From assembly GCA_037447605.1 (NCBI GenBank), contig CM074805.1, forward strand, positions 4,993,361-5,057,360: a stretch of DNA of 64,000 bases, written 5' to 3'. This DNA comes from Zygnema circumcarinatum SAG 698-1b (taxonomy: Eukaryota > Plantae > Zygnematophyceae). The notes under the pieces are model-generated. The model saw only the letters and a list, made by a program, of their open reading frames with translations. It had not been told where the DNA came from and ran no database searches. The stretch's first letter is position 1. The number at the start of each line of letters is the position of its first letter. Below, piece by piece: positions 6,287 through 26,324 of the stretch. A program made the translations under genes and the position numbers.

Positions 6287-6460
6287 AGGTGGAGTCAGAC
6301 CTTGACCATCGCTTACGAAATTCCCGAATTCCTTATGCCGGGTCGGGATCCGCGGCTCCGCCGTACCCAACCGTACCTAAATGCGTACTGTACCTAGCCA
6401 ATGCTTAATTTGCCCTACAGGCTTACGAAATTGATTTGGCAATGGTCAAGGTCTGACTCC
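6287..6460. mobile_element. Short MITE of the AGGGGGAGTCAGAC-TIR family (right TIR truncated)
   Basis: Left end AGGTGGAGTCAGACCTTGACCAT at 6287 (preceded by AAT); inverted ATGGTCAAGGTCTGACTCC ends at 6460. Both ends match the ends of the 7949-13619 element. Confidence 0.75.
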
Positions 6461-6685
6461 GCAGCGCCGGAACTGAACTGTGCTGCACCGGCCTGAACTG
6501 GACTGGAATAAACTGAACTGCGCTGCGGAAAACGCGCCGCAGACGGTCGACCCTCAGCCGAAGGTACGAATCCGCAAATATAAGCTGACGTCATTGGGTC
6601 CACGTCAGGAAGAAGTTGAAGTAAACCCTGCGAGCGCACCCTCACATGAATTCCGTATAGGTCGCGAGAATCTATAATTTGTGAA

Positions 6686-7547
6686 GGGGGCGACTATTTA
6701 CAGTGTACGTTTTCTGAATGTAGTGTACGTTTTCGGGGAGCAGAAAAAAAATCCTTTTTTTGGCTGCCCGGCGCTGTTTCATACTTTTCAGAATAGATAC
6801 AGACCTTTTTTCGTCGGATGTACGGATAGTGATTTGAAATGTACGAAGCGCGCGCGTCTACAAGGTATAAGGGCGCAACACGTGGAGCGACATGATTGGT
6901 CGCGGCAACATATGACGTGACAAGTATGTTTGGGACCGTGACGTGACGAAACGAGACGCGACAAAAGTGAAGTCCGCGGACGGCAGTCGGAAATGGCGGG
7001 AAAAAAACTGACAGATTTTTCCTGAAACACGCTACGTTATGTGCCCTATCTTTTTCTGTCAGTTTTAATCCCCGCCATTTCCGACTGCCGTCCGCGGACT
7101 CCACTTTTGTCGCGTCTCGTTTCGTCACGTCACGGTCCCAAACATACTTGTCGCGTCATATGTTGCCGCGACCAATCATGTCGCTCCACGTGTTGCGCCC
7201 TTATACCTTGTAGACGCGCGCGCTTCGTACATTTCAAATCACTATCCGTACATCCGACGAAAAAAGGTCTGTATCTATTCTGAAAAGTATGAAACAGCGC
7301 CGGGCAGCCAAAAAAATGATTTTTTTGCTGCCCCCCGAAAACGTACACTACATTCAGAAAACGTACACTAGGGGGTGTCAGACTTAAAAAATTTCAGTAC
7401 GCGTGTTCGTAAGTTTGACATCAGAACGAGTACTCCAGTATAATCAAGATCCTCCTGCGGCGGAGTACTTTCGTAACCTTTTTTTTCGTAACGCTTTTCG
7501 TAAGATTTTGTTAAGTCTGACACCCCCTACTGTAAATAGTCGCCCCC
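6686..7547. mobile_element. Mutator-like non-autonomous foldback element with ~335-bp TIRs
   Basis: 6686-7020 is a near-perfect reverse complement of 7050-7547 once the nested 7370-7528 insert is removed. Ends GGGGGCGACTATTTACAG...CTGTAAATAGTCGCCCCC. Flanks TTTGTGAA/TTTCTGAA form an 8-bp TSD with one mismatch. Confidence 0.88.
7370..7528. mobile_element. 159-bp MITE nested in the right TIR of the foldback; 3-bp TSD ACT
   Basis: TIRs AGGGGGTGTCAGACTTAA / TTAAGTCTGACACCCCCT. Removing the element and one ACT restores exact complementarity to the opposite arm (CGTACACTGTAAA). Confidence 0.92.
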
Positions 7548-8559
7548 TTTCTGAAGGGTTATATTTCTTGAACAGAAGAAATCTGAAATTTTTTACTCTC
7601 CTTTAAAGTACATTTTGGTGTTGCAGTACAGCCTGCGCAGCACCTAGGCCGTACCTCCGGACCTAGGCCTGACCCGCCCCCGCGTCGCAGCCCCATATCA
7701 AGATCGGATTCGTCGTATCCCCACAACCGCCGCCAGGCTGGCAGATCCGCCTGCTCTAGGCTGCGCGGGCCCACTGGCGGCGAGGGTGCCACGCGTTGGC
7801 CCGCACGCCACCAGAGAATGCAAGGTGGTACGGACACGTGTACGGTCAGTATGGACGAATGTACAGTACAGTAGTGAGTTTAGGGATTGCAAAAAGTATG
7901 TACAAGGGGCTTCTAGAGTTTTAGATTTCAGAACTAGAACGTTCGAATAGGGGGAGTCAGACCTTGACCATCGCCCGCGGAATTGCAAGATTTCGACCGC
8001 GGAAAGGTATTGATTTCGATTTCCGAATTCGGATCGGAAACCACGGCTCCCCCCGAACCTCTGTCACGTCCGTACGGCGGAATAGGTTACAAAAATGCCC
8101 CCAAATTTCAGAATTCCGCGCTCCCCGGGAGGCCCCCCGTTTCGAAATTCCAGCTTTCCGCCGATGAGGAATCGTGCCCCGCCTTGTCGCCATGCGCGTC
8201 ACGCACGTGCGAGCGTCTCTCTGCCGCCGCCCGGACGCCGCGACCCGCCGCCGCGCAGAGCAGCGTTTCAGTGCTGGCACAGGTTTAGGGTTTCGCTTCC
8301 CCCCGCACCAGCGTCCTCTTTCCGGCAACTGTGAGCACCACGGGAGAGCGGTGAGCGAAGACGCCAAGGCGACGAGGTACTCCCTCTCTATTCCCCTCTG
8401 TTGCTGTCTCCCTCGTCTCTCCCTCTCTGTTCCCTCTTTCTCTCTCTCTTGCTATCTCCCTCTATCACTCTCGCCCTGTTATCTCTCCCACATTCTCCCC
8501 GCCTGTGCCACTCTGCCCTGCCTCCCTCGGCCTGGCCCATGCCTCCCTCGTCTCCCTTG

Positions 8560-9250
8560 CTGCTGCTTTTCTCGCTGCTTCGTTTTCTGCTGCTGCTGCT
8601 GCTTTTTCTGCTGCTGCCCCTGCTGCTGCACCAGTTGCTTTTAGTGCTCCTTCTTTCTCTGCTTCTGCTTCTGCTGCTGCTGCTGCTGTTTCCTTTTCAG
8701 CTGGTTTTGCTATTGTTGTGCTGTTGCTGCTGCTGCTGTTGTTGCTCCTGCCGTCTTTTCTGCTGCTGCCGCTGCTTTTTTTTGCTGCTGCCGCTGCCAC
8801 TGCTGGTGCTCCTGCTTTTTTTGCTGCTTCTTGTCTGCTACTGCTGCTGCTTTTGCTTCTTTTTCTGCTACTGCTCTTTTTACTGCTTCTTTTTCTGTTG
8901 CATTTTTTGCTGTTTCTTTTCCTGTTGCTGTTGCTATTGTTGTTCTGCTGCTGCTGCTGCTGCTGATTTTTTTACTGCTTCTTTTTCTGTTGCTTTTGTT
9001 GTTGCTTCATTCTCTGCTGCTGCTGCTATTGTTGTTCTGTTGCTGCTAGTGCTGCTGGTGCTTTTTTTACTGCTTTTTTTTTCTGATGTTTTTTTTGCTG
9101 CTTCTTTTTCTGCTGTTGTTGTGTTGTTGTTGCTGTGTTGCTGCTGCTGCTGCTGCTGCTATTGCTGTGCTGCTGGTGCTGGTGCTGCTGTTGTCCTTCT
9201 GCTGCTGCTTTTTCTGCTACTGTTGCAGCATTCATTTTCTTTTTTGCTAC
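8560..9250. repeat. (TGC/TGT/TTT)n degenerate trinucleotide tract, left arm
   Basis: Dense ctgctgctg...tttttt arrays; mirrored as (GCA)n on the plus strand at ~11560-11770, 12060-12270 and 12570-12910. Confidence 0.9.
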
Positions 9251-9400
9251 TGCATTCTTCTTCCGCATTCCGCATTGCCCTGTCCTTGTGCTTCCCGTTC
9301 CTTATGCTTGTGTTGTGTGTATGATTGCATATAATTCCTCCCCTTCCTTGTGCTTGTGTTGTGTGTATGATTGCATATAATTCCTCCCCCTCCCCATTAA

Positions 9401-9470
9401 GTCGAAGTGGCGGATTGGTTACGCAACTGTTGCAAAACAGGAATAAAGGGGTTCAAATCCCCTCTTCGAC
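9401..9470 (+). ncRNA. tRNA-Cys(GCA)-like 70-nt cloverleaf with 6-nt anticodon loop, copy 1
   Basis: Acceptor stem GTCGAAG/CTTCGAC 7/7; D arm GCGG-ATTGGTT-ACGC; anticodon arm CTGT-TGCAAA-ACAG; T arm AGGGG-TTCAAAT-CCCCT; A-box-like TGGCGGATTGG and B-box GGTTCAAATCC. Confidence 0.75.
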
Positions 9471-10215
9471 CTGCACTGTTCATTCATTCTTCCATTTGTA
9501 TTCATTTATAGTTTTTGTGTTTGTGCTTCATGTCTTATATTTGTTGTTATTTTTCCTAGTTGTTTTTATTGCTTTTTGCCTTTTCCTTCAAAACTTTGAA
9601 TACGTTTTACATCATATTTTCTTTTGAGCATATATAGGTAGTTTGCTAACAAAATTATGCCGGCACACTCAGGAAAAACTGTCTTCTTTGGTTTTTGGAA
9701 ACCTTGGTGGTATAAGCAACCATATCAAGTGCGGCAATGGGCTGTATTTGATGCCATCAGTACAATTATAGAATCCCTTGTAACTACGTGTGCTCAAAAT
9801 CCAAAACGTCCGGACTTAGGAGAAACAAGCTGATAAAGGTGCAATTGATTCAACAACAATACAAAAAATATCATTAGAATGATTGACGTGTGGGCAAAGG
9901 AGGGACAAAGTGGGCGGGGGTGGGAAGACGAGGATCCACAAGAGAGACTGGAGAGGGTTGAGATCCACTAAAGAGGAGAGCGAGAGTGAGTCGGGGATAA
10001 GGCATAAGAGGGAGACAACAACAAGAAGACTGTAAGGGGCAAAGAACACAAGATGCTAAGATGTCACATACTAAGATGGGGAAGGAGACACACGGGGTGG
10101 AACAGGAAGGGAAGTGACAGAAAAAAGAGAGGGCAAGACACAGCAAGGTAAGCGAAAGAGAGATAAGAAGGGAGGGGACAGGAAAGGGGGGGGGGGGGGG
10201 GGGNNNNNNNNNNAA

Positions 10216-10285
10216 GTCGAAGTGGCGGATTGGTTACGCAACTGTTGCAAAACAGGAATAAAGGGGTTCAAATCCCCTCTTCGAC
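10216..10285 (+). ncRNA. tRNA-Cys-like element, copy 2
   Basis: Identical to 9401-9470; lies in an 815-bp duplication that spans an N gap, so it may be an assembly duplicate. Confidence 0.55.
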
Positions 10286-11421
10286 CTGCACTGTTCATTC
10301 ATTCTTCCATTTGTATTCATTTATAGTTTTTGTGTTTGTGCTTCATGTCTTATATTTGTTGTTATTTTTCCTAGTTGTTTTTATTGCTTTTTGCCTTTTC
10401 CTTCAAAACTTTGAATACGTTTTACATCATATTTTCTTTTGAGCATATATAGGTAGTTTGCTAACAAAATTATGCCGGCACACTCAGGAAAAACTGTCTT
10501 CTTTGGTTTTTGGAAACCTTGGTGGTATAAGCAACCATATCAAGTGCGGCAATGGGCTGTATTTGATGCCATCAGTACAATTATAGAATCCCTTGTAACT
10601 ACGTGTGCTCAAAATCCAAAACGTCCGGACTTAGGAGAAACAAGCTGATAAAGGTGCAATTGATTCAACAACAATACAAAAAATATCATTAGAATGATTG
10701 ACGTGTGGGCAAAGGAGGGACAAAGTGGGCGGGGGTGGGAAGACGAGGATCCACAAGAGAGACTGGAGAGGGTTGAGATCCACTAAAGAGGAGAGCGAGA
10801 GTGAGTCGGGGATAAGGCATAAGAGGGAGACAACAACAAGAAGACTGTAAGGGGCAAAGAACACAAGATGCTAAGATGTCACATACTAAGATGGGGAAGG
10901 AGACACACGGGGTGGAACAGGAAGGGAAGTGACAGAAAAAAGAGAGGGCAAGACACAGCAAGGTAAGCGAAAGAGAGATAAGAAGGGAGGGGACAGGAAA
11001 GGGGGGGGGGGGGGGGAAGGGAAGGGAAAAACAGAGAATGGAGCGTGAGAGGGAGAGAAGGCAGGAAAAACAGAGAATGGAGCGTGGAAGAGGCAGGGAA
11101 TAACAGAGAATGGAGCGTGAGAGGGAGAGAGAGTGGGAGGGAGGGAGCAAGTGAGCACACGGAGACAAACATGAGGAGAGATGGGCAAAAGAAAGGGTCG
11201 CAGGTGGCAAACTAGACGGACGTCTATATGAATAATCTTAACAGACAGGAAGACAGTCTGTCTGCAGACCAGCCGTTCAAATGGAGTTTCCAAACACCAA
11301 GCTGCGAAGAGAGTGAAAAACAAAAAACAACTAAGATAAATAACCACAAATATTTTACATCAAATGCACAAACACAAACACTATATATGAATCAAAATAA
11401 ACAAATGAAAAAATAGTACGA

Positions 11422-11491
11422 GTCGAAGAGGGGATTTGAACCCCTTTATTACTGTTTTGCAACAGTTGCATAACCAATCCGCCACTTCGAC
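11422..11491 (-). ncRNA. tRNA-Cys-like element, copy 3, with U discriminator and T6 terminator
   Basis: Reverse complement GTCGAAGTGGCGGATTGGTTATGCAACTGTTGCAAAACAGTAATAAAGGGGTTCAAATCCCCTCTTCGAC is followed by T (discriminator) and TTTTTT within about 8 nt. Confidence 0.75.
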
Positions 11492-11924
11492 ATAATGGGG
11501 AGGGGGAGGAATAACATGCAATCATACACAACACAAGCATAGGCAAAGGAACAGGCAGCAGAAGAAGAAGAAGAAGAGGCAGCAGCAACAGCAGAAAAAG
11601 CAAGAGCAAAAAAAGCAGCAGCATAGAAAGCAGCAGCAACACCAACAGCTGCAGCAGGTGCTGCAACAGCAGTAGCAGCAGAAATAGCAAAAGCAGGAAA
11701 AGAAACACCACAAAAAGCTGCAGCAGCATCAACAGCAGCAGCAGCAACAGCAGCAGAAACAGCAGCACAAAACAAAATATGGTATACAAGGTATTCAAAA
11801 TTTTGAAAGAAACTCAAAAAACAAAAAAAACAACTAAGATAAATAACCACAAATATTTTACATCAAATGCACAAACACAAACACTATATATGAATCAAAA
11901 TAAACAAATGAAAAAATAGTACGA

Positions 11925-11994
11925 GTCGAAGAGGGGATTTGAACCCCTTTATTACTGTTTTGCAACAGTTGCATAACCAATCCGCCACTTCGAC
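11925..11994 (-). ncRNA. tRNA-Cys-like element, copy 4
   Basis: Identical to copy 3; part of a 503-bp tandem repeat. Confidence 0.65.
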
Positions 11995-13947
11995 ATAATG
12001 GGGAGGGGGAGGAATAACATGCAATCATACACAACACAAGCATAGGCAAAGGAACAGGCAGCAGAAGAAGAAGAAGAAGAGGCAGCAGCAACAGCAGAAA
12101 AAGCAAGAGCAAAAAAAGCAGCAGCATAGAAAGCAGCAGCAACACCAACAGCTGCAGCAGGTGCTGCAACAGCAGTAGCAGCAGAAATAGCAAAAGCAGG
12201 AAAAGAAACACCACAAAAAGCTGCAGCAGCATCAACAGCAGCAGCAGCAACAGCAGCAGAAACAGCAGCACAAAACAAAATATGGTATACAAGGTATTCA
12301 AAATTTTGAAAGAAACTCAAAAAACAAAAAAAAAACAACTAAGATAAATAACCACAAATATTTTACATCAAATGCACAAACACAAACACTATATATGAAT
12401 CAAAATAAACAAATGAAAANNNNNNNNNNAGAAGACTGAGGCAAAGGCAACATAGCAAGGGGCAAAGGCAAAGGATGTCGGGGCAGGGGCAAGGGAGGTA
12501 AAATACGGAACGTGGAATGCGGAATGCGGAATGATGAATGAAGCAACAATACAAATAAAACAAAACCTACAGCAGCATTAGCATAAAAGCAAGAGCAAAA
12601 AAAGCAGCAGCATAAAAAGCAGCAGCGACATCAGCAACAGCAGCAGCAACATCAACAGCAGCAGCAGGAGCTGTAGCAGCAGCAGCAGGATAAGAAGCGG
12701 TTGGAGCTGCAGCAGTAGCAGCAGAAACAGCAGCAACAGCAGTAGCAGCGGCAGCAGCACAACACAAAAACAATAGCAGAAACAGCAGATGAAGAAGAAG
12801 AAGAGGCAGCAGCAGCAGCAAAAAAACCAAAAGAAAAAAAGCGCCAGCTTAAAAAGCAGGAGCAACATCAACAACAGCAGCATAAAAAGCAGCAGCAGCA
12901 GCAGTAGCAAAAAGAGCACCAATGGAGACAAGGGGGGCATGAGCAAAGGCGAGGGAGGCAGGGGCAGGTGCAAGAGCACAGGAGGCAGGGGCAAGGGAAA
13001 GGGAGGCAGGGGGAAGGGCAGAGAAGGCAGGTGCAGAGGCAAGGGCAAGGGAGGCAGGTGCAAGGGCACGGGAGGCAGGGGCAAGGGTAAGGGAGGCAGG
13101 GGCAAGGGCAAGGACTCACCGCTGCTCAAGTCCGCCGTCGTCCCTAAAAACCGATCGCGCTTTTGCCGTGGTCGACGGCACACCGCTCACCGTTCACCGT
13201 TCACTGGGGTGAGGCGAGAGGACGCTCTGCTCACTCCGCTGCAAGGATGGCGAGGGCGATGGCGAGGGAGGAGCCCTATACCCTAAACCCGAGCTGATCT
13301 GAGCTCGCAGCGAGCGAGCAGGTGGGCAGGCGGCGGCCGCGAGGCGCCGCGGCGGGACGCCGCTCGCGCGGTGGTGACGCGCATGGCGACAAAACGGAGG
13401 GCGGCGGGCGGCGGGCGGCGGAGGGAGCGCGTGGGGCCGAAAAGGGGGGAGTCAAACCTGGCCCGGAGATACGGAGGCAAAATAATTGCTCTCTGGAATT
13501 CGTGACGCCCGAGCCTGTCGAACGTCCACTTTTCGCGGAATTGGGCTGCCGTACAACGCGGAATTAGGGTCGGGGGTTTTCTGAATTGATTTGGCGCTGG
13601 TCTAAGTCTGACTCCCCCTATTGGTCTAAGATTCCGAGTTTTAGAAAATTTTTAGAACTTACGTACGACCAGTAAAATTGAACGACACGTACGGGCGGAC
13701 TGTCGGCAAATTGGCGCTGGCGATTGTAAAAGCGTTATAGAAAAGTTTAATAAAACGGCCAGACTTTTAGGACTTTTGGTTGGAATTCTCGTACACGACA
13801 CTGGGTTCTTATCCGCTAGCGAGAAAAACCGTATGGCGAAATTGGGGCCGGTGTTAACCAGATCCCTCGTGTTGCCCAGATCCGACGTGGCAAAACCTGA
13901 AATCCACACGTGTGACCGACCATATTGAGCCTTTGAAGTCATATTTT

Positions 13948-14888
13948 GGGTAGTGATATTTCCACCCCTTTTTTGGATCCAAACACCCCTTCCCGGCCGG
14001 GCAGATTTCAAAAAGGATTAAAAACGGAAAATGCTTTTTCACACCTTTTTGGAATCGATACCCACCCTCCATCGGCAGATTTTATTTTTGCGAAACAAGG
14101 AAAATGATAACCCGTCACCCCATTTTGAATATCCCGCCTACCTGAATTTTTTTCACGCTTGCGGTCAATCGCAGCCGTCGATTCCCTCGCAGATCGCAAC
14201 ACGGCAGATCACTATTTGATCTGCAGCCGGGCTCGGTCACAGCGAATGGCACGTGCCCACGTATCCCGCCAAACTCGTCTCAAAAGCTTGTCCGTACAAA
14301 TGTCGTACGGTCGCAACTTGAGAAACCCAAAATTTCGTACATTGAGACCAATCAAAATTTTCCACGTCAAAAATGTAACACGTGGCAAATGTTGATTGGC
14401 TGAGAGCTGACAATGAACGAGATCTCGGGCCGAGGGAAGCGCGCACTCGCTGTTGCGATCCGGCTTTGGCGGGACTCGTGGGCGCTTTCCATTCGCTGAG
14501 ATCGAGCCCGGCTGCAGATCGAACGGTGATCTGCAGTGGTGCGATCTGCGAGGGAATCGACAGCTGCGATTGACACACACGTGTGAACGACGGACACCCG
14601 CGAACGATCTCGTGGCGGACGGATCTTCCGCTCCGAGCGGATTCGGGCAGGCAGATATTTCTTTTCCTCAAAAAAAAAAATTTAGGGAGGCGGAATACAG
14701 TATTCAAAATGCGGTGACGGAGTATCATGTGCCTTGGTTAGCAAAAATAAAATCAGCCGACGGAAGAAGGTGGGTATCGATTCCAAAAAGATGTGAAAAA
14801 AGCATTTTCCGTTTTTAATCCCTTTTGAAATCTGCCCGGCCGGGAAGGGGTGTTTGGATCCAAAAAAGGGGTGGAAATATCACTACCC
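13948..14888. mobile_element. 941-bp Mutator-like non-autonomous element with long (~300 bp) imperfect TIRs and a perfect 8-bp TSD
   Basis: Ends GGGTAGTGATATTTCCACCCC...GGGGTGGAAATATCACTACCC; CATATTTT at 13940-13947 and 14889-14896; inverted similarity continues to ~14270/14470. Confidence 0.9.
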
Positions 14889-17800
14889 CATATTTTTACC
14901 TTTTTCGCTTTGTCAAATTGATTGTTCGGACCTCTCGTGTTCCCTGTTCAACCCCTCTGGGGCCGCGGCCGCCCTCGCTCGCTCGGCGGCCCGCGCCCTC
15001 GTCAAGATTCGTCAAGATTCGAAAGCGGTAGCGACTCTGACAGTGAGATCCTGTAAGCGAGGCCGATCTCGACCGTACAGCGCGCGGCTACGAAGGATGT
15101 CGGCGGGCAGTCGCGGGGCGGGCGCGGCGGCGCATGAAGGCGGCGGGTGGCGCGGACACAGCGGCTAACGTGCGGGGCGGAGCGGCGGCCATGGCCATGG
15201 CTCTGCGAGCGCTCGCTCTCCTCCTTGCCGCAGCGGCGGCGGCGGGGGTGGCGGCCGCAGGCGACAGGAAGGTAGGTTAGCAGAGCCGTTCTCAGCCACC
15301 GCTGCTTGCGGCTCCTCTCTTCCTCTTCACTTCTCGAGCAGGATGGAGGGCGGGGAGGGGCGAGGAGAGCAGAGGAGCAGCGGTCCATTGTAGTGTTGAA
15401 AGCTAGAAATAACTAGGCATATCTTGGTAGGAGAGCAGTGAGTGGCGAAATGTGCTCCGGCGAGGTAGGGAATGTGCGGCAAGCGGACCAACTGCGGGGG
15501 GGCGCCATCCATGGCGGGCACATGGCTGGGGGTGGGTGGGCGGCAGGTGTACATAGTGCGGCTGAACGGGCAGGCGGTGCCCCTAGCGGCTCGGCGCGAC
15601 CCCTCGCTGCGGACCTCCGCCGCGCGGAGGGAGGCGTACCGGAGGGGGCTCGTGGCGCGGCACGACCGCGTGCTGGCGGGGGTCGACGTCACGTCAGTGC
15701 CGGCCTGCCTGCCTGCCGCGCGCTCTCACTTGCTCATGCTTAATACTAGGCTCTCGTCTATGCCAATTTCCTTATAATTTTTTTCTTTTTTTTTTATTTG
15801 GGTTTTTACTCATATTTTTTTCATTGAATCGCGACACTTCGGGTAGCTTTGATTGAGAACCTATAATTCTCTATAATTAAATGAGGATAAATAATTTCTT
15901 TTTTTTTCGCAGTGCAAAGTCGAAGCTGTACAGTTACGACCACGCCATGGACGGCTTCGCGGCGGAGCTGACGGAGCAGCAGGCCAAAGCTCTCAAAGGT
16001 GAGAAATCATCGTCCGCTTTGCGGGCTTGCCAGGAGACATTTAAGGGCGTGCGAAAGGGCGCGAAAGGAAAAGAGATGAGTGCGAAAAAGCCTCCTTTGA
16101 TTCGTGTCAAGTGATCTGTCTTATTTTTTTCCTTGTATGAACCGCGCACGCGTGCAGGGGTTGCGGGGGTTCTGTCCGTGGCGGAGGACACTCACATTCA
16201 AGTCAACACGTTTTACAGTCCGACCTTCCTCGGCCTGACCCAGTCCGCCGCCAGCTCCCCGCCCGGCCTGTGGACCTCTTCCATGGGGAGTGGAGTCGTG
16301 GTCGGAATGATTGACACGGGTCAGCAGCTCGCCATAATTTTTTTTTTTTTTTTTTTTTTCAACACCGGATTCAGCCCGTCAAATCGATCAGTGTCACATA
16401 TGATTTTTTTTTTTTCTAACTTTCCTTCATGTTCGTTGAATGTTCGCCCGCCCTTCCAGGCATATGGCCGGAAGCCCCGAGCTTCAACGATACGGGTTTC
16501 CCTCCGCCTCCTGCAAAGTTCAAAGGCATCTGCCAAGCAGGATACAACTTCACTAACACCACTTGCAACAGGTGCGCGGTTGGAAGTCTCAGAAAACCAG
16601 CAAGTCCTCGAACAAAAGGTTGGGCTGAACTACTGAACAAGTGAGTGAATGCGCAGTAGGAGCTTACAAGGCTGTGAGCCTCGCCTCCGTTGGCAGGAAA
16701 ATTATCGGAGCTCGATTTTACTGTTCGGGCTACGAGAGCGGGAGGGGCCAAAACCTGAGCAACGGAGCATACGGCGAATTTCGATCCCCGCGGGACTCGC
16801 ACGGCCATGGCACCCACACGGCCTCGACCGCCGCCGGATCGACGGTGGACGCGATCGTTGGGAGCGCGAACTTTGGGAAGGCGCAGGGGCAGGCCCCCAT
16901 GGCGCAGATCTCCGTCTACAAGGTACGCGCGCAGCCAGCAGGCGGCGCGACGTGAACCGTGGCTCTCCGCACTAAGGGGACGTGCTTACTTTGATGGGTC
17001 CTGTGAATGGCGGAAAATTCTTGCCGGGAATTTCTGCAGGAGTATTTGGAGGTTGTGGTTTTAGAGTTTGTCAGTATAACAATGTCTTTTCCGTCTGTGC
17101 AGGTTTGCTTCGGCACATCTGCAAGTGGCGGGAACACTTGCTACGGCAGTGACATCACGGCGGGCATGAATGCGGCAATCAGTGACGGCGTGGATGTGAT
17201 CTCCGTCTCCTTGGGGGGCAGCAGCGCTCCCTATCCCTTATCGGACTCCATTTCAGCGGGGGCTCTTTCTGCAATCCAGGCCAACATAGTGACGGTCGTG
17301 TCGGCGGGAAACTCGGGCAGCGCGGTGAGGACAGTGGCGAATGTGGCCCCGTGGATGCTCGTGGTGGCGGCGGCGACATTCCCAAATGGCGGCGACGCTG
17401 TCGGGGGGCAGGGAGGCAGCGCAACCAAGACCATTGTTCTGGGTAATGGGGCGTCTTATAACGTGAGTTCGAAGCAGCACTCCACTCACTGTTTCCCCGT
17501 CGTAGACTAATGCTCGACCTTCTCATTTTGTGATGCTGATAATCTGGATGTACATGTTTTAGGGATTTCAAAAGCCTGTCTCTAAAACGAGGCTGTTTAT
17601 TTGTACGTTCCAGGGTTATGCGTATACTGCTGGAACTGGACCGGACCTCTTGCCCCTTATTTATGCCCAACAAGCAGGCCTTCCAGGCGTTGCAGCAACG
17701 GATGCCGGGTAATATTATACTCATCCACACTGTGCAAATGTGAACGTGTACTCTTTCTCTTCGAACATTCCTTTTCTTTACGTTGGTGATTGCATAAGAA

Positions 17801-19148: not shown

Positions 19149-19158
19149 NNNNNNNNNN

Positions 19159-20906
19159 AAGAGAGACTGAGAAACCTTCTTACACAGGGCCATTGAGGAG
19201 GAGTGCTCGACCTACCAAGCAACCTGGCTGGTTGGCCGACTTCCACCAACAACCCTCTTGGAAGATGACGAGAAAGAAGAAGGTTAGGACACCTAGTGAC
19301 TCGGCTGATTTTGCAGGCATAGCAACCTGCATGATGGCGCACATTTCAGAACCTCAAAGCTATGGAGAAGCTGTGCAAGGTGAGGATTCTGAAAAGTGGA
19401 GGGTGGCCATTGATAGTGAACTTAGCAGCCTGGAGGAAAATGGAACGTGGAGATTAGAGGAGCTTCCTAAGGGTAGGAAAGCTATTGGCTGTAAATGGGT
19501 ATTCAAGGTGAAGCGCAAGGCGGATGGGAGCGTGGATCGCTTCAAGGCTAGGCTGGTGGCAAAGGGGTATAGTCAAAAGGAGGGGATAGATTACTCGGAA
19601 ACCTTTGCACCAGTGGTAAAGTTCAACTCTCTTCGCTCACTCATTTCCATTGCAGCAGCTGAGAAGATGCATGTCCATCAGCTTGATATTAAGACTGCAT
19701 TTCTCTATGGGGATCTTAGTGAAGAGATCTATATGGAGCAACCGGAGGGCACGGTAGTAGCAGGCAAGGAGCACCTTGCAGCGGTGGCCAGTGAAGAGCC
19801 TTGTACGGGCCTGCCAGGCACCCCGACTGGGTACCAAAGATCACATCTTTATGGAGGAGGGATACAAGCGCTTCCAATCGGACCACTCAGTCTACAGCAA
19901 AGGTACCGGGAGAGAGCTTTTGTATGTGGGCATTTACGTTGATGATCTGATCATTATTAGTTCTTCCATGGAAAGCATTCAGAGTCTGAAGGACTTGATG
20001 AAGAAGAACTTTCAGATGTCAGACTTAGGGGAGGCCCAATACTTATTAGGAATTCAGCTCAAGAGGGGGCCAGATGGCAGTTTGTTCCTTAGTCAAGAGA
20101 AGTATGCAAAGGATGTCTTGGCTAAATTCAGAATGGACAAGTGCACTCCATGCACAAGTCCCATGGACCCTTCCCAGAAACGGGCTTTTCACGCGTCACC
20201 CCAGTCACGCGAAGAAGGGNANNNNNNGNNNNCNNNNNNNNNNNNNNCNGCCATCGGAAGCTTAATGTACTTGATGATAGGCACAAGGCCAGACTTGGCT
20301 AAGGCAGTTAGCACAGCGAGCAGGTACATGGAATTTCCAGGGGAGAGGCATTGGGAGGCCGTCAAGAGGATCTTCAAGTTCCTGAGGGGAACTGTTGACT
20401 ATGGGATCAAGTTTGAAGCCGGGAATGGAAGTGAGGTATATGGTTATACGGATGCAGATTGGGGAGGCGACGTAGATACAGCGAGATCTACCTCTGGCTA
20501 TGCATTCATGAACAGCGGAGGAGTGGTGACTTGGAGCTCCAAGCTCCAGGATTCAGTGGCACTCTCAAGTACTGAAGCTGAGTACATGGCAGCGTGCCAT
20601 GCGGCCAAGGAAGCAGCTTGGTTGCAGCAGTTCTTTGAAGAGTGTGAGAGGAATCAAACTCCCTTGCAGCTGTTTACAGATAACCAGTCCTCAATGACTT
20701 TGATGCAAAATCCAGTTTTTCACAAGAGGTCAAAGCACATAAGAATTCAGTATCATTTTGTGCGTGAGCTTGTGGTTGAAGGAAGAATAGCTGTAGCTTA
20801 TGTTGGCACGAAAGACCAGGCAGCAGACATGCTCACAAAAGGGGTCAATGGAGAGACGTTGTGGAAAAACAGCATGCTCTTAGGATTGGGGCCTCAAAGG
20901 AACTAA
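19159..20906 (+). CDS. Copia pol fragment (RT + RNase H) with apparent frameshift(s) near 19770-19850
   Basis: ORFs 19109-19942 and 19776-20906 carry consecutive RT/RNase H motifs in different frames. Low-quality bases at 20220-20250 suggest that some indels could be sequencing errors. Confidence 0.93.
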
Positions 20907-21690: not shown

Positions 21691-22924
21691 GATCTCACGT
21701 CTTTGCTGCATACAAACCCCAACGCGTGTACGGCGCTCTCTCGACGGCCTTAGACCCGCGGCAAACAATGTGGACGTTCATGTCCGGCACATCCATGGCC
21801 TGCCCGCACGTGTCTGGAATTGCTCTGCTGCTGCGCTCAATACGGCCCACTTGGTCTGCTTCGGCCATCTCCTCCGCAATCTCAACCACCGGTAAATAAG
21901 GAACCCTAGTTGGAAGACGAGCAATCGTGAAATTCGTGATTTTTTCGGATCATTGAAAGGAACACATCGCTAGCAAGGATGATCATAGAGGATGGTCAAA
22001 ATGCGTTGCAGAGGTGGAGCCTTCTATCACCGTTCATGGCGGAAGACTTCTGAACGCATTCTCAAGACACTTTTAACGCATGTTGTTCATACTTGTTCAT
22101 CTTATCAGTTTGTTGCGTGCTATGTCACTCGCAGCTGCGGCGCTGAGCGGTAACACGAACGACTATGGCAGCGGGATGGTTCGCCCCAATTACGCAGCGA
22201 ACCCGGGACTCGTGTATGAGACAGGGCCATGCGACCACGCCCTTCACGTGTGTTCCTTTTACTCTAACTACACGGCATATTACTACACCGGCTGCTATTG
22301 TCCGTCCAAATTCGAGGCATTCGATTACAACGCCCCTTCTCTCATGATGACTGGTGTTACCAGCAGCGGATTCACCACAGTCCGGCGCGTCACAAACGTG
22401 GGCCCTGCTGTCTCAACCTACACAGTCTCCATCAGCCAGCCACGAGGAGCTGTTGTGACAATCACCCCCTCTGTACTTTCGTTCAATGCCAGCAACCAAG
22501 TGCTTTCATTCACCATCAGTGTCAAGGGAACAGTAAACACAAACGATTCCAGTACCGGTGAGTTAACACGTGCACAACGAGAACTCGTGTTGGTCCTGTT
22601 ATTTGTGCTCCATCCAAGTCAGTAGCTGTTCTTTGAGATCCATGAGTTTATTCTGAGGGAACATATCGTTCAAGTTTTATCATATAAGTCTATCCCCAAC
22701 CAAATACTTGTACTGCTTGCAAATTTAGCAGCTGATTTCCGGTTCATGATTGCCACTGTAGTCAACTTTGGAAAAGTACGTACTGGCCTCACTTCCTGAG
22801 CTGCGTCAAAACTCTTGACATCTGCAGGAGATTACGCACTGGGACTGTGGAATTGGACGTCAACAGATGGCCAGTACGTTGTCAAAAGTCCCATCTTGGT
22901 GAATGTCATTGGAATCACAGGCCA

Positions 22925-25250
22925 ACCACCGTCACCACCACCACCGTCACCTCCCCCAAGACCCCCGCCTAACCCTCCTCCATCCCCACCACCATCCCCG
23001 CCACCAAAACCTCCCCCACGACCGCCTCCTAATCCTCTTCCTTCCCCGCCACCATCACCTCCCCCAAGGCCTCCTCCCAATCCTCCTCCTTCCCCACCAC
23101 CATCACCTCCCCCAAGACCCCCGCCTAATCCTCCTCCTTCCCCACCACCATCCCCGCCACCAAAGCCTCCCCCAAGGCCGCCTCCTAATCCTCCTCCTTC
23201 CCCACCACCTTCACCTCCCCCAAGACCACCTCCTAATCCTCCTCCTTCCCCACCACCATCACCTCCCCCAAGACCCCCACCCAATCTTCCTCCTTCCCCA
23301 CCACCATCCCCGCCACCATCACCTCCTCCAAGGCCACCTCCTAATCCTCCTCCTTCCCCACCGCCATCACCTCCCCCCAGACCCCCACCTAATCCTCCTC
23401 CTTCCCCGCCACCATCACCTCCCCCAAGACCCCCACCTAATCCTCCTCCTTCCCCGCCACCATCACCTCCCCCAAGACCCCCACCTAATCCTCCTCCTTT
23501 CCCTCCACCATCCCCGCCACCATCACCTCCCCCAAGGCCACCTCCTAATCCTCCTCCTTCCCCACCACCGTCACCTCCCCCCAGACCCCCACCTAATCCT
23601 CCTCCTTCCCCACCACCATCACCTCCCCCAAGACCCCCACCTAATCCTCCTCCTTCCCCGCCACCATCACCTCCCCCAAGACCCCCACCTAATCCTCCTC
23701 CTTCCCCGCCACCATCCCCGCCACCATCACCTCCCCCAAGGCCACCTCCAAATCCTCCTCCTTCCCCACCACCGTCACCTCCCCCCAGACCCCCACCTAA
23801 TCCTCCTCCTTCCCCGCCACCATCACCTCCCCCAAGACCCCCACCTAATCCTCCTCCTTCCCCGCCACCTTCCCCACCACCATCACCTCCCCCACGGCCA
23901 CCTCCTAATCCTCCTCCTTCCCCACCACCATCACCTCCCCCAAGGCCACCTCCTAATCCTCCTCCTTCCCCACCACCATCACCTCCCCCACGGCCACCTC
24001 CTAATCCTCCTCCTTCCCCACCACCATCACCTCCCCCAAGACCCCCACCTAATCCTCCTCCTTCCCCGCCACCATCACCTCCCCCAAGTCCTCCACCACG
24101 CCCTCCTCCATCGCCGCCTCCTCCCCCCCCTCCTAGGCCTCCTCCACCTTCTCCTCCCAAATCACCCCCCTTCAAACCTCCACCACCATCTCCACCGTCA
24201 CCGCCTCCTGCACCTCCACCACCATCACCCCCTCCGTCTCCACCTCCTCTATCACCACCGGTGCCTTCGTTACCACCTCCTTCGCCACCCCCTCCTTCGC
24301 CACCCCCTCCTTCGCCATCACCCCCCACACCACCCCCACCTTTGCCACCACCCCCCACACCACCCCCTCCTTCGCCACCACCCCCCACACCACCCCCTCC
24401 TTCGCCACCACCCCCCACACCACCCCCTCCTTCGCCACCACCCCCCACACCACCCCCTCCTTCGCCACCACCCCCCACACCACCCCCTCCTTCGTCACCA
24501 CCCCCTCCTTCGCCATCACCCCTCACACCACCCCCTTCTCCATCACTTCCACCTCCTTCCCCATCTCCTCCATTGCCACCCCCTCTGTCACCATCGCCAC
24601 CCCTTCCGTCGCCACCCCCCCCATCACCACCCCCTCCGTCGCCACCCCCCCCATCACCACCCCCTCCTTCCTCATCGCCCCCATCACCACCCCTCCCTTC
24701 CCCATCGCCCCCATCATCACCCCTCCCTTCCCCATCGCCCCCATCACCACCCCTCCCTTCCCCATCGCCCCCATCACCACCCCCGCCTTCCCCATCGGCA
24801 CCATCGCCACTCCTTCCTTCGCCACCAGTTCTCTCACCTTCCCTACTTTCCCCACCCCCTCCTTCGCCACCCCCTCCGTCGCCCTCGCCCCCGACACCAC
24901 CCCAGTCTCCATCACCACCCCCTCCTTCCCCATCGCCCCCGTCGCCACCCCCATTGTCTCCATCGCCACCCCCTCTTTCGCCGCCCCCTCCTTCAGCTCC
25001 TCCGTTGCCACTCCCTCTGTCACCATTGTCACCCCCTCCTTCGCCACTTCCTCCTTCACCACCCGCCTCTTCTCCACCCCCTCCTTCGCCACCGCCTCCT
25101 TCGCCTCCCTCACAACCTTCTTTGCCCGCCCCTCCGTCGCCGTCGCCGTCGCCGCCCCCGCCTTCGCCTCCTCCTCCATCACCTCCCCCTCCATCAGACT
25201 CCTTTCCTCCACCAGAGGCTTCCCCTCCACCGAACGCTCCCCCTCCACTG
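22925..25250 (+). repeat. Coding tandem repeat: ~36-bp ([12 protein letters not shown])n followed by irregular SPn/TPPPPSPPP repeats
   Basis: Seen directly in ORF 22815-25268; synonymous third-position variation between units. Confidence 0.93.
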
Positions 25251-26324
25251 GACGCTGTTCCCCCATAACTTGCTTTACACTCTTTTCGATGCAGGTATCG
25301 TTCCACTTCCCCTCGCAACATGACATCATTCTATTTATCTCTAATATTGTCTTCTGCTTCTACGGGCTAACAGTTTTTATTTCGATAGGCAGATGTGTAA
25401 AATGCCTACTTGTTCCAACCTGCCTTGTCTGACTGTCGTTGTCTGAATTTCGTCTTTTGTGCAGATCTAGAAGCGCTTGAAAGCACACAATCCTCCATTT
25501 TAAAATAGGAGGGATCCTGAGGGAGTTGAGGGAGCCTTCAATTAAATGCGTAGCTCGGCATGTGCAGTTTCGAAATATCCATTGATTTCACGAGTGTGAC
25601 ATCCTTGATTTCTACCTAAGTGAAGGCTAGCAATGTATTGAGGAAGGCCTGAGCGATAAGGTTTGCCTTAGAGTTTTGAGTGTGCAATTTTTCTTTTTTT
25701 GTTTAGCCGGCAGGAATGGGACATTCGATGCTTGGGCAATGTGAAAAAAAAATTCATAACTATATAAAGTTAGTACAATGACAGGAATTGTCGTCATCGC
25801 TACAGATTGTCGATTTTCTGTAAAGCAAACTCATCTGCTCGTCTGTGCCTGCCAGAGTAGCAACCGACCGATAAAGTCGGGCGTTGCTGGCATTCTTGCT
25901 TTCCCACTTGCCCTCTCGCCTTCATCCATCCCATTTCCCCCTCTCCCTCACTCCCCTCCACTTCCCTGAGTTCCCTCTCCTCCCTTTCCTCTCCCCACTA
26001 CCTGACTACCTCCCGCGTCGTAAATCTTTTTGCTTCGAGACTGCGCAGTCGCCATGATGCTACACCATATGTAGCACACTGACGAGTTCAAAGCCTGCAA
26101 AGTAAACATGCAACACTATGTTTTATTACAGCAAAAGAATAGAGTTGTCCTGAATCTCGCAGACCTCTTTGTAAGGAAAAGTAGCAATTGAAAGACAGGA
26201 AGCGGAAGCAGGACCTCAGGGCAGCACGCGACAAGGACAGAGCTCAGACGGCCTCGACGAGGAGGGGAGAGGGGAGGTGCACAGGCCCCACAGGCGGCCG
26301 TGGGCCACAGGGCGACCGAATGAT

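Follow-up and report, generated by a model that had tools for sequence, protein, structure and literature searches.

Within the 64-kb window of Zygnema circumcarinatum DNA analysed here (64,000 nucleotides, to whose numbering all coordinates refer), two long arms face each other at about 7950-9629 (left) and about 11316-13618 (right). They are joined by an inverted, colinear chain of five modules, with identities between 65 and 90%. In both arms the same order is read inward: a TA flank, a TIR, a GC-rich module, a pyrimidine-rich tract, an impure (CTG)n tract and lastly a tRNA-Cys-like cloverleaf with its AT-rich tail. The mirrored, TIR-bounded layout described in an earlier note on this DNA is thus directly visible, and the limited resemblance of the arms agrees with the view expressed there that this is not a fresh inverted duplication. 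As in foldback elements, long terminal inverted arms make up most of the 7950-13618 stretch, although at low identity, and the middle domain is unpaired. The first part of that domain (9630-10203), which closes with a run of 18 G, contains a 58-aa ORF as well as a purine-rich tract, and its second part (11017-11315) is purine-rich with 39-nt repeats (TRF repeats at 11021-11130); neither part has an inverted partner.

The dinucleotide TA, a candidate target-site duplication, is read from the sequence at both flanks (7948-7949 and 13619-13620). The TIRs are 26-30 nt long and 88-90% identical between the two ends. The left one (7950-7975, + strand) begins with GGGGGAGTCAGAC, and positions 7946-7975 agree with 13622-13593 at 27 of 30 nucleotides, including the flanking AATA. 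With at most one mismatch, the 14-mer core of the TIR occurs at only four sites of the window, 6288, 7950, 13445 and 13605, each at an element end or near one. The left flanking domain (7950-8128, + strand) is a MITE-like terminal unit, the first 49 columns of which match the left end of a 176-bp MITE at 6288-6463 (+ strand) with 82% identity. The right flanking domain (13445-13618, - strand) comprises the right TIR (13593-13618) and an inner, oppositely oriented TIR core (13445-13458), and over its last 41 columns it shows 80% identity with the right end of that MITE. Because this MITE, which has TA at one side only, carries left-specific and right-specific subterminal sequences in the same orientation, both ends belong to one family. 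Another MITE of 157 bp with the same TIR core and TA at both flanks (7371-7527, + strand) lies within one arm of a different hairpin element and is absent from the other arm of that palindrome; the TIR family has thus moved. In one comparison of the filled and empty sites of this MITE, three extra bases were found and not two, so a 3-bp duplication or a later indel is possible. More generally, small hairpin elements crowd this region.

The GC-rich module of the left arm (8179-8337, + strand) ends close to a donor-like GT at about 8379 and is 66.5% identical to positions 13397-13228. Its mirror image in the right arm (13228-13397, - strand) runs up to a donor-like GTGAGT on the minus strand. 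Both modules share an exact 19-mer (8184-8202 and 13374-13392) and an exact 10-mer containing TTTAGGG (8282-8291 and 13280-13289). Within the 64 kb, these words are confined to their mirrored positions; chance alone would give 0.02 matches for the 19-mer and 0.09 for the 10-mer. The term 'promoter-like' that has been used for the GC-rich module is a label only. Further inward, a low-complexity, pyrimidine (CT)-rich tract with TRF periods of 21 and 37 (8380-8560, + strand) mirrors an AG-rich tract of 21-nt G-rich repeats detected by TRF in the right arm (12920-13113, - strand), with 65% identity between 8380-8559 and 13095-12920. The left impure (CTG)n tract (8587-9209, + strand; TRF period 3, 208 copies, 65% matches) contains 30- and 92-nt higher-order repeats and has a composition of 50% T and 4% A. 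It mirrors the (AGC)n tracts of the right arm, the outer one of which (12560-12920, - strand; TRF period 3 at 12603-12759) is 70% complementary to it.

Directly upstream of the left tRNA-like gene, a 46-nt block is repeated 2.2 times (9293-9393, + strand; TRF, 94% matches), with a TATAA motif about 28 nt before the cloverleaf, and the last 50 nt of this region are 90% identical to the right arm. The inner domain of the right arm (11316-12419, - strand) consists of 2.2 tandem units of 503 nt, which are 99.3% identical and differ in A-run length only. Each unit is composed of an AT-rich tail, a tRNA-like gene, the upstream block and an (AGC)n tract. At least 2.2 copies of the unit are thus found in the right arm vs one in the left, i.e. 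the arms harbour variable-number tandem subrepeats, part of which could stem from assembly.

Four matches to the Rfam tRNA model, all of 46-47 bits, were detected in the window: 9401-9471 and 10216-10286 on the plus strand, and 11421-11491 and 11924-11994 on the minus strand. Each arm therefore has a tRNA-like gene, as the earlier note stated. Nevertheless, only two of these sequences are independent, because the 10216-10286 call is artefactual and both minus-strand copies lie in the near-identical 503-nt units. The left cloverleaf (RF00005, 46.4 bits) is tRNA-Cys(GCA)-like, and the two right-arm genes score 46.9 bits each. One base is missing from the anticodon arm: in the covariance-model alignment the fifth 5' position of the anticodon stem is gapped in every copy. 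This leaves an 8-nt loop on a stem of 4 bp (right) or 3 bp (left); if the stem is instead drawn with 5 bp, the loop shrinks to 4 nt. Neither form has the 5-bp stem and 7-nt loop of functional tRNA-Cys. The GCA triplet is present in the loop, and ARAGORN reports a 4-base 'anticodon' to which no amino acid can be assigned. Judging from its sequence, the cloverleaf should be incapable of normal decoding. Pol III promoter boxes can be recognized in the box A (TGGCGGATTGG) and box B (GGTTCAAATCC) regions, as judged against the consensus. Downstream runs of at least four T begin at +40 in the left copy, whose AT-rich tail (9472-9629, + strand) is 78% identical to that of the right arm, and at +7 in the right copy.

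A search for other Rfam families in the inner region yielded none that is credible (SCARNA7 reaches 16.5 bits vs a threshold of 65), and the Rfam tRNA search revealed no solitary tRNA-like copy in the 64-kb window. Conservation upstream of the cloverleaf extends over 50 nt and the units are in tandem within mirrored arms, features that do not fit a tRNA-derived SINE. No exact match to the cloverleaf core, with or without the missing base, or to the T-arm plus acceptor was found in metagenome, bacterial and archaeal genome, and viral collections. These blanks lend no support to a bacterial origin of the tRNA, in what is a weak test as exact matches were required.

The element is shorter than it appears. 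Positions 9399-10201 are repeated at 10214-11016 with 100% identity over 803 nt, beginning directly after a first gap (10204-10213), and the same G-run has 18 G at the end of the contig that precedes the gap (contig X) vs 16 G in the contig that follows it (contig Y, 10214-12419). From these sequence features, gap 1 is a contig overlap left unmerged. The stretch 10204-11016 thus comprises a gap and an artefactual second copy, including the tRNA-like call at 10216-10286. The true span is about 4,856 nt (about 4.86 kb) vs 5,671 nt as assembled, the content of a second gap being extra, and about 815 nt of the 5.7 kb initially attributed to the element are an assembly artefact. Gap 2 (12420-12429) interrupts a 503-nt tandem unit. 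The AT-rich tail of the unit precedes it, and the sequence that follows it (12488-12597) mirrors left-arm positions 9200-9301, just outside the left tRNA block. It probably hides one further tRNA-like gene with its upstream block, about 130 nt being hidden if just one unit is absent. Continuity across gap 2 depends on scaffolding, and the mirrored order resumes after it exactly at the expected place. The convergence of the tRNA modules is independent of scaffolding, because facing plus- and minus-strand modules are both found within the single contig 10214-12419.

To assess coding capacity, ORFs of at least 50 aa were listed and ten of them were scanned against Pfam with E values up to 1, yielding no match (0 of 10). 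The sole non-repetitive ORF is the 58-aa one of the middle domain. Against 1.8 billion representative proteins it gave two weak matches only, one of which was inspected and proved to be a repetitive junk ORF; no credible relative was thus found. That no ORF of the element matches any protein family supports its earlier description as non-coding. We had considered a protein-coding cargo, which is ruled out by the lack of Pfam matches and of credible relatives of the 58-aa ORF. An ORF running across the tRNA module, used as a route to further copies, yielded no candidate. No transposase was present among the ten large ORFs scanned, and none matching the element was found in the window, where mobile-element proteins are represented by a Copia-type RT fragment alone.

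Altogether, the 7950-13618 stretch is most probably one copy of a non-autonomous, cut-and-paste DNA transposon of the foldback type, in which tRNA relics have been amplified as passengers. One module series, copied long ago in inverted orientation, makes up the long arms, whose length rises and falls as internal units are duplicated in tandem. From the one full copy read, we infer that the unit moves as a whole, which class of enzyme moves it and that the tRNA relics are passengers. A transposase encoded elsewhere would recognize the 26-30-nt TIR, excise the whole unit and reinsert it, and it may also recognize the inner TIR-core copy at 13445. The TA dinucleotides on both flanks hint at a Tc1/mariner-like enzyme. 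The tRNA-Cys-like cloverleaf would have been captured once, and then carried and multiplied as passenger DNA. As both arms share the defect, the loss of the anticodon-arm base would have preceded arm duplication. The cloverleaf may still be transcribed by Pol III.

It is improbable that the arms arose instead by a local segmental duplication in inverted orientation, flanked by two small and independent MITEs, with the unit never having moved whole. The right flanking domain resembles a small MITE that is complete: the TIR core is present at 13445 (+ strand) and at 13605 (- strand), and the domain is about as large as the nearby MITEs, so the right end could be a separate small element; small hairpin elements are crowded around it, and one full copy is visible. 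However, no clear partner core lies inward of the left end, TA is present at the outer ends and absent before the inner core at 13445, the MITE at 6288 unites left-type and right-type ends in one family, and homology between the arms runs on, weakly, from the TIR inward.

Plain passenger decay does not predict how much better the cloverleaf has been preserved than its tail. Over 281 nt, the left tRNA module (9351-9629) is 85% identical to the right one (12042-11765), but this identity is uneven: 95.8% for the cloverleaf and 90% for the 50-nt upstream block vs 78% for the adjacent tail and 65-68% for the outer modules. The arms differ at 3 of 71 positions in the cloverleaf vs 35 of 160 in the tail (Fisher p = 4.5e-4). 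Together with the A-box- and B-box-like motifs and the downstream T-runs, this pattern would be expected if the cloverleaf and its upstream block were a working Pol III unit of the transposon family kept by selection, whose facing copies feed small RNAs through convergent or hairpin transcripts or act as tDNA-type chromatin boundaries. The earlier note proposed that the element is able to give convergent Pol II and Pol III transcripts or long dsRNA; as far as the sequence goes, a read-through RNA could pair the two modules over about 190-240 bases, in a predicted duplex of about -280 to -320 kcal/mol vs about -64 to -73 kcal/mol for shuffled partners. We nevertheless consider such a function unlikely. 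Only two independent sequences are present in the window, one of the two substitutions inside the tRNA body disrupts base pairing in a stem, and the arms have different discriminator bases as well. The same pattern would result from conversion between the arms, from tandem-unit turnover or from AT-rich DNA decaying faster.

Lastly, a chimera of arms from different copies of a repeat family joined by scaffolding is very improbable: there are two gaps inside the element, the 803-nt artefactual duplication flanks the first and the tandem units beside the second are identical save for homopolymer lengths, but the perfect overlap places contigs X and Y at the same locus, contig Y alone has both facing tRNA modules, beyond gap 2 the mirrored order goes on where expected and the TA flanks match at the outer ends.

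With the locus read as a foldback-type transposon, the four tRNA calls of the window are transposon-borne relics, one of them an assembly duplicate, and none should be counted as a tRNA-Cys gene in annotation; both gaps can be closed or corrected. The element adds an algal case of a foldback element with a MITE partner and shows a route by which a captured tRNA gene multiplies inside transposon arms. A new direction might come only from how unevenly the cloverleaf is conserved. If this unevenness did reflect a selected Pol III unit, the 'dead tRNA' would turn out to be a non-coding module with a function, dispersed by a foldback element.

Similarly to Stowaway-like and Tc1/mariner MITEs, the element has short, conserved TIRs and small, 157-176-bp relatives, it is non-coding, and TA directly flanks both the large element and the MITE at 7371-7527. 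In contrast with them, the one empty-site comparison suggests three added bases and no matching transposase was found in the window; at about 4.9 kb, the element is also roughly ten times as large as a MITE. By eye, its TIR sequence looks unlike the Stowaway consensus.

The cloverleaves share with nuclear tRNA-Cys(GCA) genes their 46-47-bit scores in the Rfam tRNA search, GCA in the loop, box A- and B-like motifs and T-runs, but they lack an anticodon-arm base, are transposon-borne and are tandemly amplified. Large numbers of repeat-linked tRNA-like sequences have been reported in streptophyte algae and gymnosperms, reaching thousands in some streptophyte genomes (PlantRNA 2.0 preprint, 10.1101/2021.12.21.473619). 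The multiplication of tRNA genes in transposon arms could contribute to those counts.

Literature searches on foldback or DNA transposons with tRNA genes in algae yielded no account of the element's family. The architecture itself, for which the earlier note knew no described family, is that of foldback transposons: their long arms are inverted and contain tandem repeats next to a flanking domain, the middle is unpaired, ORFs are absent, and a MITE has both ends. The published Tetris element of Drosophila virilis and D. americana is a non-autonomous foldback transposon assigned to Mutator, with 8-10-bp target duplications and DAIBAM as its MITE partner (PMC4079207). Like our element, Tetris and DAIBAM are non-autonomous and have no conserved ORF. 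The arms of Tetris similarly comprise outer flanking, variable-copy tandem-repeat and inner domains around an unpaired middle, and DAIBAM is a short MITE with both terminal portions of Tetris, just as the MITE at 6288-6463 has both ends of the present element. Unlike Tetris, the element described here has TA, or possibly 3-bp, flanks and far more diverged arms (65-90%), and it resides in an alga, with a tandem unit built on a tRNA relic and a trinucleotide tract.

The element at 7950-13618 is real and most probably a mobile element of an ordinary kind, carrying an unusual putative passenger. Read inward from both ends, its left arm (approximately 7950-9629) and its right arm (approximately 11316-13618) show the same order of modules, the mirrored layout that the earlier note had described. 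The order is TA, terminal inverted repeat (TIR), flanking domain, GC-rich module, CT-rich tract, (CTG)n and tRNA-like block. The TIRs, just inside the TA, match at 27 of 30 positions counting the flanking AATA, and each is followed by a flanking domain of ~175 nt. The GC-rich modules of the two arms are 66.5% alike and share two perfect matches, a 19-mer and a 10-mer that includes TTTAGGG, found at no other place in the 64 kb. Next inward, a CT-rich tract precedes an impure (CTG)n tract (TRF period 3, 208 copies, 65% matches). The innermost tRNA-like block is 85% identical between arms over 281 nt; its cloverleaf of 71 nt is preceded by 50 nt of upstream sequence and followed by an AT-rich tail. 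The centre of the element (9630-10203 and 11017-11315) is without an inverted partner. We also observed approximately seven copies of a 21-nt G-rich repeat, GGCAGGGGCAAGGGCAAGGGA, at 12930-13113, mirrored by a C-rich tract in the left arm; its G runs could form G-quadruplexes.

The mirrored cassette proposed previously stands, but not its size of 5.7 kb, which is inflated by an 815-nt assembly artefact. The 803 nt directly after the first internal gap (10214-11016) are 100% identical to 9399-10201. Furthermore, the upstream contig stops inside a run of 18 G; at the corresponding position the downstream contig reads 16 G and continues beyond them. The length of the identity and the matching position of the G-run indicate that the contigs on either side represent the same locus. 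Judged from these sequences, the gap at 10204-10213 is an unmerged contig overlap, and 815 nt (one overlap copy plus the gap) should be removed from the assembly. The span of the element then decreases from 5,671 to ~4,856 nt, and the tRNA predicted at 10216-10286 duplicates the one at 9401-9471. The second gap (12420-12429) comes after 2.2 tandem units of 503 nt, which differ from one another only in the lengths of the A-runs at their junctions. To its left lies the AT-rich tail of the 503-nt unit, and to its right 12488-12597 mirrors the left-arm segment 9200-9301, just outside the left tRNA block. In the simplest reading, this gap would hide one further upstream block and cloverleaf, ~130 nt, or more whole units. 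Neither gap has a reading frame that would need to be kept.

Matches to the 14-nt TIR core with at most one mismatch were found at 6288, 7950, 13445 and 13605, and allowing two mismatches added 6450, 7371 and 7514. Such matches bound two small elements, of 176 bp (6288-6463) and 157 bp (7371-7527), the latter with TA on both flanks. The 176-bp element resembles the large one on both sides: its left side matches the subterminal sequence specific to the left end (82% over 49 columns), and its right side that specific to the right end (80% over 41 columns). The presence of both end types on one small element indicates that the left and right ends of the large element belong to one family, and argues against their being the ends of unrelated MITEs. 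The 157-bp element splits one arm of a distinct palindrome and is missing from the opposite arm; this is direct evidence of insertion by this TIR family. The filled site (7369-7529) differs from the empty one (6686-6705) by the 157-bp MITE and three extra bases. These allow two readings: ACT..ACT around termini A...T, or TA..TA and one added base. The target duplication, TA or 3 bp, is therefore ambiguous from this comparison.

Two hairpin-shaped elements neighbour these sequences. The one at 6686-7547 has arms (6702-7015 and 7369-7055) that are 97.5% alike, the right one being broken by the MITE at 7371-7527, and each arm harbours one CCAAT-N9-CCACG box (6881-6899, minus strand; 7172-7190, plus strand). 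The other, a non-coding element of 941 bp at 13948-14888, has arms 86-89% alike (13948-14273 versus 14888-14465) and is flanked by an exact 8-bp direct repeat, CATATTTT (13940-13947 and 14889-14896). Its centre contains convergent boxes of the same type (14348-14366, plus strand; 14381-14399, minus strand), and it looks like a foldback MULE with promoter boxes. Five such boxes were observed in the window versus 0.15 expected by chance, four of them in these two hairpins.

The tRNA-like copies score 46-47 bits with the Rfam tRNA model (threshold 29). In the model alignment, the UUGCAAA loop is intact, with GCA at the anticodon position, but the anticodon stem lacks the fifth base of its 5' strand. 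The stem that remains has 4 bp in the right arm or 3 bp in the left and closes an 8-nt loop; the alternative fold has 5 bp and a loop of 4 nt. ARAGORN assigns no amino acid and gives an anticodon of four bases. As the stem defect is common to both arms, the loss is presumably older than the arm duplication. Motifs resembling box A and box B are still present, as are T-runs downstream, and Pol III transcription of these copies is possible.

Conservation between the arms is uneven. Identity is about 90% in the TIRs, 65-68% in the outer modules, 90% in the block upstream of the tRNA-like gene, 95.8% in the cloverleaf and 78% in the adjoining AT-rich tail. Three of the 71 cloverleaf positions differ: one is a G-C to G-U change, another makes or breaks the outermost pair of the stem, and the third is the discriminator base. 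The contrast in divergence between cloverleaf and tail (Fisher p = 4.5e-4) comes from two sequences, the only independent versions within the window. This contrast would fit selection on a Pol III unit, arm-to-arm conversion or turnover of the tandem units, or quicker decay of AT-rich DNA. All three are compatible with the pattern, and two sequences cannot separate them. Computed pairing indicates that the left and right tRNA modules could pair strongly in one read-through RNA, which makes the dsRNA idea of the earlier note physically possible.

The previously noted absence of a convincing protein ORF was confirmed. In the full listing, the ORFs of the large element are all translations of low-complexity DNA, and the ten scanned against Pfam (E up to 1) matched no family. 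The sole non-repetitive ORF (58 aa) had two weak matches only, and the one inspected was a junk repeat protein. The surrounding DNA is eukaryotic nuclear and not human, with an NCS1 permease exon in the window besides a Copia-type reverse-transcriptase fragment. The ORF with the latter domain (19776-20906; RVT_2, E = 1.5e-22) is probably part of a retrotransposon and adjoins gaps at 19149 and 20220-20249. The assembly is scaffolded, as shown by six gaps of 10 N and a cluster of shorter ones. A long low-complexity or tandem-repeat region is probable at 22800-25330, where ORFs of ~800 aa occur on both strands and GC skew is extreme (-0.55 to -0.61).

We found no published description of the family of the large element in the literature, and searches for exact patterns in public metagenome, prokaryote and viral collections yielded no copies. 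Its layout matches that of foldback transposons, especially closely Tetris of Drosophila virilis. Tetris lacks ORFs and has a flanking domain, long inverted arms that contain tandem repeats, and a middle domain that is unpaired; DAIBAM is a MITE having both its ends in common with Tetris (PMC4079207). Unlike Tetris, the large element has short TA-type flanks, its arms are much more diverged, and its tandem unit is centred on a tRNA relic.
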